Positions 1 to 6,103 of a stretch of DNA of 64,000 nucleotides are shown piece after piece; position 1 is the stretch's first letter; each line of letters starts with the position of its first letter. Both the position numbers and the translations under genes were made by a program. The notes below the pieces were generated by a model. That model had not been told where the DNA came from. It ran no database searches and worked only from the letters and a program-made list of their open reading frames with translations. The DNA lies in contig CP075492.1 in NCBI GenBank assembly GCA_021613535.1, positions 13,330,001-13,394,000 of the forward strand, given 5' to 3'. This stretch comes from Adineta vaga (Eukaryota > Animalia > Rotifera).

Positions 1-755
1 TCAATTACAAATTCAACAACCTCATTCGGTAAATATTTATCTAAAAAGAAAAACTTTCAAATTTTCCTTTTCTAACTCGATCAATTTAAAAGAAAGCAAT
101 GTAAACTATGTCTAAAGATAAAATTGTTATTCATGAGAAATATTTTTTTTCCGATGTAAAATGTATATCGTTATCGATGTGAATAATTTCTAACGTGAAA
201 AAATGTCTATGATTGTTTCTTTAGACTGATAATCCATCATCTTCAAATGATTTAAATGAACGAACAAATCTTCGTTCACATTCCTTATATGAAATGATGA
301 GCAGTACGAATCGTCCTGTCTCATTAAATGTTGATCATGCTGAACAATTAAAACGTGAAGTTGAACGACTTCGTCAAGAATTAGTTCTTCAACAAGATAA
401 ACATCAAAAGAAATTGAAAGATATTCTTCAAGATGATCAAAATGCTCGAAATGAAAACTTACGTTTACAAAGAAAATTACAAGTTGAAGTTGATCGTCGT
501 GAACAACTCTATAGACAATTAAGTGAAAGTGAATCATCGTTAGAAATGGATGAAGAACGTGCTTTAAATCAAAAAATTAAATCTAATTCAAAATATGAAC
601 CATCAAGAATTAGTTCGTCATCATCTTCATCATCTCAACATAATCTCGCACGTTCAAGAACAGCATCTAGTCCAGCATTTACACTTCATCAAAGTAACGA
701 ATATCTTCAAAGAACAAGATTACCATCCAATAGTTTAGATAATAATATGGAATAA
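1..755 (+). CDS. CCDC6: 3' part of coiled-coil domain-containing protein 6 (exons <1..28 and 225..755)
   Basis: Peptide EVDRREQLYRQLSESESSLEMDEER matches the conserved CCDC6/H4 C-terminal motif. GT at 29 and AG at 223-224 keep the frame into the 294..755 ORF. Confidence 0.85.
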
Positions 756-987
756 ACAATCAATGCTTTTTCTTTTCAATGTACATTGTATCTTTTTCAT
801 TTTATTTGGATAAGAATTCCAATTGAATCGAATAAACTGTAAAGAACTTCTTCTTCATCATCTATCTATACGGTCTTTTATCACAGATTGATCCGAATGA
901 TACTATCTATTTGTGAACTAATAAATATATGATAAAATTGAAGAGAAGACAACAACAACAAGAAGAACGTGTCAATGATAATTCTAG

Positions 988-2141
988 ATGTGTGATATTC
1001 TATTAATTGAAGCATTTTATGATGGTTCACATCGTTGTTTGATTGATTTATTACATCGAACATTATCAGCTCGTTCGATCTTAGTAACATTACCGGGTAC
1101 AAAATGGCCATGGCGTGCGAGATGTTCTGCATTGATTCTATCAGATTTAATACCGAAAAATGAAACGAATACATTGAAATATCTATTCAGTTCATCGATC
1201 GTGAATTTAAGTGAATTAATTTCACTTCGATCTGATCTTCGTTCATTAAAAACGATTATTTATTTTCATGAAAATGATTTAGCTTATCCAAAACAGAATG
1301 AACAACAAGAACAACGAGATTTTCAATATGGTTATAATCAAATATTAACAGCATTAGTGGCAGATATTTGTTTATTTAATTCGCTTTATAATCTAAATAC
1401 ATTTCTGGATAAACTTGGACCATTTCTTAACCGAATACCGTCACCAAAAGCAAACATTCAAGATATTCGACAGAAAATTCAACAAAAATCTCAAGTATTC
1501 TACTATCCATTAGAGAAATCATTAGTACCGATTCAGGTAAATTGATTGATTTGATTTTTTTTCAATGTAAATAAACACAAAGCTTTTAAAGACTAATACA
1601 CAAAGAACAGGTCCATTATGTATTGTTTGGCCTCATCGTTGGGAACATGATAAAGATCCTGATACATTCTTCTCTGTTGTCCTTGAACTTTATCAAACAC
1701 ATTCATTAATCTTTTCATTAATCATTCTCGGTCAATCCTATGGTGAACAACCTGCTATTTTTAGTGAAATTCAATCGAAATTACCATCAAATTATATTCG
1801 TCATTGGGGTTTTGCACAATCAAAAGTTGATTATGAACAGTTATTACTCGAAGGTGACGTAGTTGTATCAACAGCTCAACATGAATTCTTTGGCGTAGCA
1901 ATGTTAGAAGCATGGCCGAGCGGGATGTGTACCACTCGTACCTGATCGATTAGCTTATACAGAACTTTATCCTAATGAACATCATCGATATAGAACACGA
2001 ATACAGTTATTAAATAAATTAAAAGAATATTGTCAAAAACCAGATTATGTTCGATATAAAACACCAAAACAAGATACGACACCGTTTGAATGGGAAACAA
2101 ATGAAAATATCCGAGAAAAATATTTACAATTATTTCAATAG
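988..2141 (+). CDS. GTDC1: Glycosyltransferase-like domain protein 1 / tRNA-queuosine alpha-mannosyltransferase (QTMAN); exons 988..1536 and 1592..2141, with an apparent +1 frameshift at about 1914
   Basis: Motifs ILLIEAFYDGSH, TLPGTKWPWRAR, YFHENDLAYP, RDFQYGYNQI, IVWPHRWEHDKDPDTFF and STAQHEFFGVAMLEA. The expected C-terminus (CRAGCVPLVPDRLAYTELYP...LFQ*) continues in a shifted frame. Confidence 0.9.
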
Positions 2142-2379
2142 AAATTTTCATATAAAGAAAGAAAAGAATAAAACTTATGATTATCTGAATCTTCAATCAG
2201 TATATATTTTAAAAAAAGTTTATTTTCTGTTCTATAGTGTCCTCTATTGATTAAATTCTTATTAGTAGACTGCTCGAACCATCGATATGAATGGTAAATT
2301 TCATGTAAAATCGATTTTTAAGGAAATCTCTCGAAAGTTTATGTTTCGTGTTTTGTCCAAAACAAATCCAATATCAAAA

Positions 2380-4074
2380 ATGTCAACTAGTGCATTGAAT
2401 TTTGAAGTTACCCATACATGTAATACAACTAAAGCACGCGTTGGTCATATAAGATTCGGCCGAAATCATACATCTCGTGGTCCGATTGAAACACCTGTGT
2501 TCATGCCTGTTGGTACACAAGGCACATTGAAAGGTCTTACACCTGAACAATTACATGAACTTAATTGTCGAATTATTCTTGGAAATACTTATCACTTAGG
2601 ACATAGACCAGTAATACATCGTGGATTTTATTGATTTCTCATCTTTCTCTCTCTTTATTCCTTTGTTATTAAGGGTCCTGAATTAATGAAAGAAATGGGT
2701 GGTCTTCATTCATTTATGCATTGGGATGGAGGACTTCTAACAGTAGATTTTTGTTGAATAGTTTACATGTTAATCTAGACAATTTTATAGGATTCTGGAG
2801 GTTTTCAAATGGTATCGCTCGTTAAATTATCAGAAGTTACAGAAGATGGTGTCAAATTTCAATCCCCGCATGATAAAACAGAAATGTTATTGACACCCGA
2901 AAAATCAATTGAAATTCAAAATATAATTGGTAAGAGATTTTATCGTAAAACGTCGAATATATCACTACGATAAAAAATCATTTGAATTTTTCCACGAATG
3001 CCATGTAGGCGACAAGCGAACGATGGAAATTTTTTATGTTTATAGGTGCTGATATTATGATGCAATTAGATGATGTCGTTTCCAGTACAATAAGTGGACC
3101 ACGAGTCGAAGAAGCAATGTGGAGGTTTGTTTGAAATAGTAAACTTTTAAAATGAAATACTGTTCATATTTATGCAGATCATTGCGATGGCTAGATCGAT
3201 GTATAGCAGCACATTCTCGTCCTACTGAACAAAGTTTATTTCCAATTGTACAAGGTGGTTTGGATGAAAAATTGCGAGAACAAAGTGTCAAAGGTAGAAT
3301 GTTCTTATCTAATTATTCGTTGAAGTTTTCTTTTCTGTTTTTCTAGAAATTATCAAACGAGATTGTCCTGGCTATGCTATTGGTGGTTTAAGTGGTGGTG
3401 AAGATAAAGATCATTTTTGGCGTATGGTCACACTTTCGACAGAATATTTACCAAAAAATAAACCAAGATATTTAATGGGTGTTGGGTTTGTTGATTAAAA
3501 CATTTATCTCATAACTTATTGAATATATATACATTATAGATTTGCAATTGATCTTGTTGTTTGTTCGGCACTGGGTTGTGATATGTTCGATTGCGTATTT
3601 CCAACTCGAACAGCTGTATGTATACGACTAGTTTCTATGAAAGAAATATCTTTGTTCTTCTTTATTTTCTTTCAAAGCGTTTTGGCTGTGCATTAGTAGA
3701 TAGTGGACAATTGAATTTAAATAAACAGATCTATGAAAAAGATCATCGTGTGATTGATGAAAAATGTATTTGTCCAATTTGTAAATCGGGTTATACTCGA
3801 TCATATTTGAATACAATTGTAACAAAAGAAACGACTGCTTGTCATCTATTGACACTTCATAATGTTGCATATCAGGTTTGACAATGGTATGTTATTGCAT
3901 TTTCTAAAGAAAAATTGATTAATTTAGATGAGATTAATGGCTCGAATTCGTCAAGCAATTATCGAACAACGTTTTCCAGAATTTATCAAAGAATTTGTTG
4001 CAATCTATTTTCAAGATAAAGACATACCAGTATGGATAACGAATTCTTTAAAATCAGTGAATATTGAATTATAG
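2380..4074 (+). CDS. QTRT1: Queuine tRNA-ribosyltransferase catalytic subunit (eukaryotic TGT), multi-exon; alternative in-frame ATG at 2341
   Basis: [86 protein letters not shown] and the zinc site CICPIC...HN, all reconstructed across canonical introns. Confidence 0.96.
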
Positions 4075-4524: not shown

Positions 4525-6103
4525 ATGGGTACTAAATCATCCAGACATCAACAATCTTCATTTATGGAAAGCCATCAGCATCAGCTATCAAGTAATCATT
4601 ATCGTGCAACATGGGATCATCGTATTGCTAGTGCTAGTGACAATGCTTTTCGTATTGCTCATGAAGCAATCAAACAGTCGAACAATTTCATTACTTCTCC
4701 ACCTATTGAAGAACCTGCTCATCAACTTCACCCATTTCGACCACCGAAACATAATCAATCGGGAAGAAGAAAACATCTTCATACACCATCAGCACATCAA
4801 AAGATGCTTGGTATAAGAAAAAGTCAATCAACTGGAAATTTAGTTAATCCAAATTTTGTCATTACAACTGATCAATTCTCTCATGATCCGTTTAAACGAA
4901 AACAACGAAAGAAATCTTCATCATCTCAAATATCAGTGCAATCATCCGAATTTTCAAATATGTCAAAATCAACATCAACAACAAGTTTTTCGGATAAAAC
5001 ACCGTTTTCCGGCACAAAACATAAACGAACAAAAAGTCCCAAAGATCTTAATGTAGCGTTTATTGATGCACATGATTTGAAAGTAAGTATCTTTCTTTCA
5101 TTAATTAATAATATCGATATATATATATATGTATTTTTCGAAATAGAGTGTTCGTGAAATTGGTCGAGGTAATTTCGGTACAGTTTATCATGCGATTTAC
5201 AAAAATACGTATGATGTTGCATTGAAGACGCTCAATTCATTTGATGGAAGTTTCACTGGTAGTGTTACTGATAGTAATGATCATCAAATGCAAGAACTAC
5301 TTCAAGAAGCAGATACAATGACACATTTAAAACATCCAAATCTTCTACGTATAATTGGTTTGAGTTTTTTTGGCGATGGGCAAAAATTAAGTTTAATTAC
5401 AGATTTTATGAAAAAAGGGTCATTATTAGATTATTTAAAAAATCGTCGAGAAGTGTTTTTAAAATCAGAACCATACAAAATTTCGAAGAAATTAAATAAT
5501 TTTAGTAGGCAAATTTATGCAGCCATGGTTTATTTAGAAGAACGAGAAATTGTTCATCGAGATTTAGCAGCAAGAAATTGTTTGATTGGTGAAAATGATA
5601 TATTGAAAGTTGGTGATTTTGGTTTAACAAGGTGAGTAAAATCGAAATGAAATAATACGAAGAAAATCAATTGTTTTTAGATTTACAGATTCTGGTTTAT
5701 ATCGTGCAACAACGAATACTGTTTGTGCACCACGTTGGACTGCTCCAGAAGCTTTAATCGCATCGAAATTTTCTTCACGTTCAGATGTTTGGAGTTATGT
5801 AAGATGATTGAAATCTGTTCTTTTTATCATATCTAATATATTGATTTTGATTTGTCATAGGGTGTCACTCTTTGGGAAATTTATTCATTAGGTGAACGAC
5901 CGTATGGTTCGATGCATAATTCTGTCATTTATGATGTTTTAAAAAATTCTTCGGAAAATATTGCACATCATTTATTGAAACCTCGTCGATTTTGTTCGGA
6001 TGAAACATATACACATATTATTCTTCTTTGTCTAACACATAATGTCACAATGCGACCACGTTTCCGTGATTTACAACAACGTATTATAACTATTCTTGGA
6101 TAG
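4525..6103 (+). CDS. Non-receptor protein tyrosine kinase with a predicted N-myristoylated, low-complexity N-terminus and no SH2/SH3 domains
   Basis: MGTKSS (G2/S6 pattern); IGRGNFG, VALKTL, HRDLAARNCL, KVGDFG, RWTAPEAL, SDVWSYGVTLWEIYSLGERPY across 4 exons. Confidence 0.88.

Follow-up and report, generated by a model that had tools for sequence, protein, structure and literature searches.

Genes for two queuosine tRNA-modification enzymes are neighbors in most bdelloid rotifers and probably separately controlled

In Adineta vaga, a bdelloid rotifer, the gene for the queuosine mannosyltransferase QTMAN (GTDC1; positions 988-2141) lies directly upstream of QTRT1 (2341-4074), and both genes are on the forward strand. 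The pair sits in a 64-kb stretch of DNA (C3:13330001-13394000; hereafter the window, to which positions without a contig name refer) of a 100.8-Mb genome in six contigs. The sequence is AT-rich, with about 30% guanine plus cytosine (GC). GTDC1 has been identified as QTMAN, the maker of mannosyl-queuosine (manQ) on tRNA-Asp, and QTRT1/QTRT2 insert queuine (PMC11755703; preprint 10.64898/2026.03.22.713446). By orthology, the bdelloid QTRT1 and QTRT2 would insert queuine at tRNA position 34, and QTMAN would mannosylate the queuosine at that position (Q34) of tRNA-Asp. We find that GTDC1 and QTRT1 are adjacent or collinear, in the same order and on the same strand, in seven lineages of bdelloids, among them Didymodactylos carnosus, which branches deeply. 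From the comparison of these sequences, we consider it moderately probable that they are two separately controlled genes, which have been head-to-tail neighbors since before the sequenced bdelloids diverged and which are not co-transcribed. On present evidence, the linkage is real, old, and previously undescribed, and it behaves like ordinary conserved gene order.

Adjacency of GTDC1 and QTRT1 in bdelloids

Contigs from other lineages (designated here by L numbers) were reached through relatives of GTDC1 and then scanned with the exon peptides of the window; spacers were measured from the GTDC1 stop to the QTRT1 ATG. The spacer is 199 nt in A. vaga, 192 nt in A. ricciae, 79 nt in L010/L011, 334 nt in L029, 354 nt in D. 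carnosus, 2976 nt in L026/L105, and 4266 nt in Rotaria socialis. It thus varies approximately fifty-fold among bdelloids (79 nt to 4.3 kb). Two further lineages have an intact GTDC1 with no QTRT1 close by: None was found within 10 kb in A. steineri, where Kelch-repeat genes are present instead, or within 9 kb in L111. In the exon-1 tree, D. carnosus and L010 are the deepest branches, and A. steineri is nested within Adineta. Because order and strand are the same in A. ricciae, R. socialis, D. carnosus, and further lineages, the simplest history that these sequences suggest is that the adjacency was probably ancestral to bdelloids and was later lost twice. Note that bdelloids are paleotetraploid, and some of the compared lineages could therefore be old duplicate blocks.

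Two of the spacers have contents of their own. In L029, the spacer holds a degenerate tandem copy of the 5' part of QTRT1 (L029:745-935), comprising the upstream element described below and part of exon 1, which precedes the functional start. In L026 and L105, a gene on the opposite strand lies between GTDC1 and QTRT1 (L026:6363-8022 and L105:2065-2910); it has a signal peptide-like start and a RicinB lectin domain and is without a counterpart in the A. vaga window.

Rough reasoning suggests that, with tens of thousands of neighboring gene pairs, about one chance adjacency of consecutive-pathway enzymes is to be expected per genome. A single GTDC1-QTRT1 pair in one genome fits chance and carries little weight alone; this adjacency, however, recurs across bdelloids. 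Beyond them, no TGT gene was found near the GTDC1 homologue on the non-bdelloid eukaryotic contigs with enough flanking sequence (L032, L035, L039, and L040). No GTDC1 of Brachionus or another monogonont was recognized among the matches listed or in 20 cluster look-ups.

The pair is part of a collinear block of six genes, namely Ras (-), a PDI gene (-), DUF2046 (+), GTDC1 (+), QTRT1 (+), and a kinase gene (+). The block is whole in A. vaga, A. ricciae, and L026 and partial in A. steineri, R. socialis, L010, and L111. The functionally unrelated DUF2046 gene precedes GTDC1 also in A. ricciae, A. steineri, R. socialis, L026, and L010. Its adjacency to GTDC1 is found in at least as many lineages as that of GTDC1 and QTRT1. 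A. steineri keeps it although QTRT1 is no longer there; DUF2046 is absent in D. carnosus and L111. Downstream of QTRT1, the kinase gene occupies the same position in A. ricciae and L026.

Protein searches were run exon by exon, and exon/intron models were read by eye from the sequence and its translations (table 1). The best relatives of the window's GTDC1 come from bdelloids and other animals and bear the name tRNA-queuosine alpha-mannosyltransferase; in a tree of animal GTDC1s, the bdelloid sequences form a single clade. Exon 1 is 91% identical to A. steineri and 86% identical to A. ricciae, which have the closest GTDC1 proteins on record. No other PF12038 locus exists in the genome. The piece of exon 2 at 1592-1912 gave a weak match to Glycos_transf_1 (E = 8.7e-5, under the curated cut-off), and most full-length bdelloid orthologues carry PF00534. 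The full-length GTDC1 proteins retrieved from Logan/ENA (P0162, P0151, and P0161) are all encoded on genomic contigs, some without introns; none derives from an mRNA. The single GTDC1 intron of A. vaga has a counterpart at the corresponding site in A. ricciae, A. steineri, R. socialis, L010, and D. carnosus and is missing from L026, L105, L106, L111, L027, and L029. Since it is kept in Adineta, R. socialis, L010, and D. carnosus and missing in several other lineages, it was apparently lost within bdelloids.

QTRT1 has nine exons, GT-AG introns of 48-116 nt, and a stop at 4072-4074. Eight of the nine exons were scanned (exons 1 and 3-9), and all match the Pfam TGT family in profile order (3-355 of 357). 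Among solved structures, the closest to exon 1 are catalytic subunits of eukaryotic QTRT1 (E = 4e-17). The translation contains the catalytic aspartates in DSGGFQ and DMFDC, a queuine pocket of the eukaryotic type (GGLSGGE), and a CxCxxC...H zinc site. The exons are collinear with those of five other bdelloid lineages. The ATG at 2341 is the start kept in A. ricciae, R. socialis, L026, and L029, and the short basic N-terminal extension that begins there is conserved in four other lineages. Intron 3 differs in content among bdelloids: It measures 116 nt in the window (2930-3045), contains an opposite-strand gene of the LicD family in A. ricciae (L017:7930-9429), and extends over 2.7 kb without a long open reading frame in D. 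carnosus (L015:9105-11845).

A whole-genome search found one copy each of GTDC1 and QTRT1. A second TGT gene, on chromosome 6, is QTRT2, with its best match to solved QTRT2 chains (E = 2e-38), and two QNG1-like queuosine-salvage genes lie on C4. Thus, GTDC1 and QTRT1 are the only neighbors within the pathway. QTRT2 (C6:7712567-7713766; L003:1447-2646) is an intronless gene of 399 codons, and QTRT1 has eight introns.

Much of this layout had been proposed in a first-pass annotation of the window. Its naming of the two genes is borne out by the Pfam QTMAN_N and TGT matches and by the matches to solved structures. The genes are co-oriented at the distance it gave (about 200-240 nt), with 199 nt from the GTDC1 stop at 2141 to the ATG at 2341, or 238 nt to the alternative ATG at 2380. 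The two sequences are non-homologous, as it held, and the adjacency is not confined to one species or assembly, which it had left as a possibility. A literature search found no published description of the linkage, and the annotation likewise knew of none. The GTDC1 stop that it placed at 2141 does exist but is not in one frame with the start; the extra G at 1914/1915 that shifts the frame was overlooked.

Table 1. Features of the GTDC1-QTRT1 region in the A. vaga window.
Feature	Position	Strand	Details
DUF2046 coiled-coil gene, last coding exon	294-755	+	PF09755, E = 2e-23; gene begins before the window
Acceptor-like TTCTAG flush with GTDC1 ATG	982-987	+	Candidate acceptor for trans-splicing or for an intron in the 5' untranslated region
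GTDC1/QTMAN exon 1	988-1536	+	QTMAN_N PF12038, E = 2.6e-53, profile 2-168 of 168
GTDC1 intron	1537-1591	+	55 nt, GT-AG
GTDC1/QTMAN exon 2 (glycosyltransferase domain)	1592-2141	+	Readable only with a frame change; stop 2139-2141
Extra G, +1 frameshift in GTDC1	1914-1915	+	TGG, against TG in six other bdelloid lineages (nucleotide alignment)
AATAAA, likely GTDC1 polyadenylation signal	2167-2172	+	26 nt past the stop
QTRT1-specific conserved upstream element, candidate promoter or leader	2237-2271	+	35 nt, unique in the genome
Conserved proximal region before QTRT1 start	2286-2340	+	69% identity to A. ricciae; blocks in five-lineage alignment
Acceptor-like AG	2321-2322	+	AG 18-19 nt before QTRT1 ATG in most lineages
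QTRT1 exon 1	2341-2610	+	TGT PF01702, E = 2.3e-18; second in-frame ATG at 2380
QTRT1 exons 2-9	2674-2742, 2791-2929, 3046-3124, 3178-3293, 3347-3485, 3540-3615, 3678-3875, 3928-4074	+	TGT matches for exons 3-9
Tyrosine/serine-threonine protein kinase gene, downstream neighbor	4525-6103	+	PF07714, E = 6.6e-32 on 5222-5632

Upstream signals and control of the pair

The DNA before QTRT1 is conserved in a manner specific to that gene. The element at 2237-2271 is identical in A. ricciae at 34 of its 35 positions (97%), at a synonymous divergence of about 1. By comparison, identity between the same two species is only 53-63% over the initial 91 nt of the GTDC1-QTRT1 spacer, in the spacer between DUF2046 and GTDC1, and in the QTRT1 introns. 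The element also precedes QTRT1 in R. socialis, L026, and L029, irrespective of the distance to GTDC1. In R. socialis and L026, where GTDC1 lies 3-4 kb off, the element and the proximal stretch that follows it remain at a constant distance from the QTRT1 ATG. Its positions on other contigs (L017:7252, L019:11361, L026:9198, and L029:956 and 748) document a sequence that is near-invariant across bdelloid genera. Judged by this pattern, the conserved DNA upstream of QTRT1 looks like a gene-specific promoter or leader, not an intercistronic spacer, and the strongly conserved element is a candidate regulatory site.

Other origins for the conservation of the element were considered and rejected. 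As a general promoter motif it does not qualify, with the 35-mer unique in the genome and its 15-mer core not clearly enriched (21 matches versus 9 for the control). As a structured RNA it has no Rfam match and a weak consensus fold (-5.4 kcal/mol). In Rotaria, L026, and L029, the element opens with an ATG and begins an upstream open reading frame of 14 codons with the same aligned end; in both Adineta species, ATA stands in place of this ATG and the seventh codon is a stop, and the DNA is conserved nonetheless. Constraint on a peptide is rejected as the sole cause, because the reading frame holds in Rotaria, L026, and L029 and not in Adineta.

Processing signals were also compared around both genes. 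In all lineages examined, an AATAAA either lies on the GTDC1 stop or follows it within about 100 nt. A YAG stands directly before the GTDC1 ATG in seven of eight bdelloid lineages (sites on L017, L104, L026, L010, L111, and L015 and at 982-990 of the window were among those compared), and the remaining upstream DNA cannot be aligned; R. socialis is without the AG. Many of the spliced-leader (SL) RNA genes in the A. vaga genome occur as head-to-head pairs about 156 nt apart, clustered on chromosome 5 (for example, at C5:9.88-9.93 Mb and C5:10.91-10.93 Mb).

In the interpretation that we favor, of two separately controlled neighbors, GTDC1 transcripts would probably end at the AATAAA shortly past the stop, and QTRT1 would probably be driven from its own conserved upstream region of about 100 nt (2237-2340), whose promoter function is predicted from its conservation. 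Inheritance may be the main reason that the adjacency has persisted, because compact bdelloid genomes are slow to lose their small-scale gene order. Several observations weigh against this interpretation. Acceptor-like AGs are found at, or close to, the start codons of both genes. The genome contains 58 copies of the SL RNA gene, compared with 0 matches for a control pattern. In L010, where the spacer is shortest, the GTDC1 stop and an AATAAA overlap, and the QTRT1 ATG directly follows a strong acceptor, an arrangement that resembles an intercistronic region. Furthermore, D. carnosus keeps only GTDC1-QTRT1, with no other window gene within 7 kb upstream or 1.6 kb downstream. GTDC1-QTRT1 might thus outlast its flanks, as it is the sole adjacency of the block visible in that species.

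The observations just listed would fit a true operon, ancestral or lineage-specific, in which GTDC1 and QTRT1, possibly together with DUF2046, would form one precursor, with 3' end formation after GTDC1 and SL trans-splicing onto QTRT1, coupling queuine insertion to queuosine mannosylation. The shared strand, the spacers of 79-354 nt in five lineages, and an adjacency that goes back to the bdelloid ancestor are consistent with it, as is the A. vaga spacer itself, where the AATAAA is followed by a pyrimidine-rich AG acceptor (2223-2237) and then by the AG at 2321-2322. We nevertheless regard an operon as quite improbable, given the spacers of 3.0 kb in L026 and 4.3 kb in R. socialis, the broken adjacency in A. 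steineri and L111, and the conserved QTRT1-specific region at a fixed distance from the QTRT1 ATG. The opposite-strand RicinB gene inside the spacer makes co-transcription unlikely in L026/L105 in particular. A variant would treat the pair as the remnant of an ancestral bdelloid SL operon (possibly DUF2046-QTMAN-QTRT1) that still works in lineages with minimal spacers such as L010, with crown-group bdelloids such as Adineta and Rotaria having later gained an internal QTRT1 promoter that allowed the spacer to grow and the pair to separate. We hold this to be just as improbable; if true, no pathway-coherent operon would have been documented in Rotifera before. Selection could also have kept the genes together without co-transcription, if separate promoters shared a chromatin domain or a regulatory input (for example, queuine supply) and separation was thereby slowed. 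The consecutive biochemical steps of the two enzymes (PMC11755703), the like order and strand in seven lineages, and the retention of the pair in D. carnosus without the other window genes nearby would all fit. We consider such selected linkage unlikely, however, as the unrelated DUF2046 is joined to GTDC1 equally often, the adjacency was lost twice independently with GTDC1 left intact, and the other pathway genes are scattered. In mammals, moreover, expression of GTDC1 and of Qtrt1/2 is reported to shift in opposite directions with age (preprint 10.64898/2026.03.22.713446).

An extra base in the A. vaga GTDC1

The GTDC1 copy in the window is interrupted by a single inserted base. Exon 2 is open from 1592 to 1912 (ending in MLEA), and the frame that starts at 1593 takes over from 1923 (beginning GCVPL) and runs to the stop at 2139-2141. 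Read without correction, the frameshift leads 30 nt on to a premature TGA at 1943-1945, with the loss of about 75 conserved C-terminal residues. The frame past the insertion has no further stops, and the insertion is the only lesion. In this downstream frame, the ratio of nonsynonymous to synonymous substitution rates (dN/dS) is 0.11-0.30 in comparisons with A. ricciae and A. steineri, which is similar to that between intact copies. Because the corrected downstream frame is still conserved, the frameshift would have to be of very recent origin or else an error of the assembly within a GG run, so that the extra G marks either a null allele that arose recently or a mistake in the assembly. An exact look-up of the exon-1 reading frame returned no independent assembly of A. 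vaga.

If the base is real, the pair would be half dead in the sequenced strain, with QTMAN a recent pseudogene or null allele and QTRT1 alone functional. The absence of the extra G from all six other lineages and the removal of conserved C-terminal residues are in keeping with such a loss. On the other hand, it is the sole lesion in GTDC1, the frame beyond it is free of stops and has a low dN/dS, and the extension of G to GG is a typical polishing error. In addition, the six-chromosome A. vaga assembly collapses a diploid genome into a haploid sequence (PMC8494291), so that the other GTDC1 allele may be intact. On balance, we see a real insertion as quite possible but do not favor it. The reference A. 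vaga QTMAN model should be checked, since it contains a one-base error or represents a strain without manQ. This matter is independent of the operon question.

Function and comparison with known systems

The first-pass annotation had gone on to propose an operon or functional mini-cluster, and manQ in rotifers. The first of these proposals is poorly supported, in view of the variable spacers, the antisense gene in L026, the two losses, the upstream element that QTRT1 has of its own, the equal linkage of DUF2046, and the lack of reported operons in rotifers. The second is reasonable from orthology and from purifying selection in other bdelloids, although the QTMAN frame is broken in this assembly; its interpretation as a whole is thus partly supported. 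Orthologues of GTDC1 are annotated across invertebrate phyla, and for this reason manQ in an invertebrate is not new as an inference. The intact bdelloid QTMAN orthologues, which are under purifying selection, predict manQ-tRNA-Asp in bdelloids, and its presence in the sequenced A. vaga strain depends on the frameshift. A functional linkage would make the pair one of few instances in animals in which a single unit encodes two tRNA-modification enzymes that act consecutively. Rotifers are known to trans-splice but not to have polycistrons, and such a linkage would raise the question of whether they possess operons.

Bacterial queuosine operons, which contain tgt with queA and further neighbors, resemble the bdelloid arrangement in that consecutive queuosine-modification genes stand side by side. 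However, on about 60 bacterial metagenome contigs with DUF3524/QTMAN_N homologues, no tgt was found within up to 8 kb of the homologue. A bacterial-style linkage is therefore rejected as the origin of the bdelloid pairing, which was not inherited from such an arrangement. Homologues of QTMAN_N/DUF3524 at 30-40% identity are common on bacterial contigs (L043-L103; GC 0.60-0.72), including some named Omnitrophota and Actinomycetota.

The vertebrate system of QTMAN (GTDC1) and QTRT1/QTRT2 is similar at the protein level, with orthologous proteins, a QTMAN_N domain and a probable GT-B domain, the catalytic and zinc residues of QTRT1, and a QTRT2 partner. It differs in that the window copy of QTMAN is frameshifted. 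Human GTDC1 and QTRT1 are on different chromosomes.

Operons resolved by SL trans-splicing in nematodes, tunicates, and chaetognaths share with the bdelloid pair a common strand, a short spacer, a polyadenylation signal followed by an acceptor, and SL RNA genes in the genome. Chaetognath operons have been called at a spacing of less than 250 bp (PMC12460157), and operons are unreported in rotifers (PMC7986045). Unlike in these systems, the spacing of the bdelloid pair is unconstrained (79 nt at the shortest, 4.3 kb at the longest), the spacer can hold an antisense gene, a conserved element of its own precedes the downstream gene, and the adjacency was lost twice.

Conserved microsynteny offers another comparison. 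As in such blocks, the pair is embedded in a larger collinear set of six genes in Adineta, Rotaria, and other bdelloids, and unrelated neighbors are kept equally often. Compared with microsynteny by descent alone, the pair is nevertheless unusual in two respects: Both enzymes act on the same tRNA nucleotide, and theirs is the sole adjacency of the block seen in D. carnosus.

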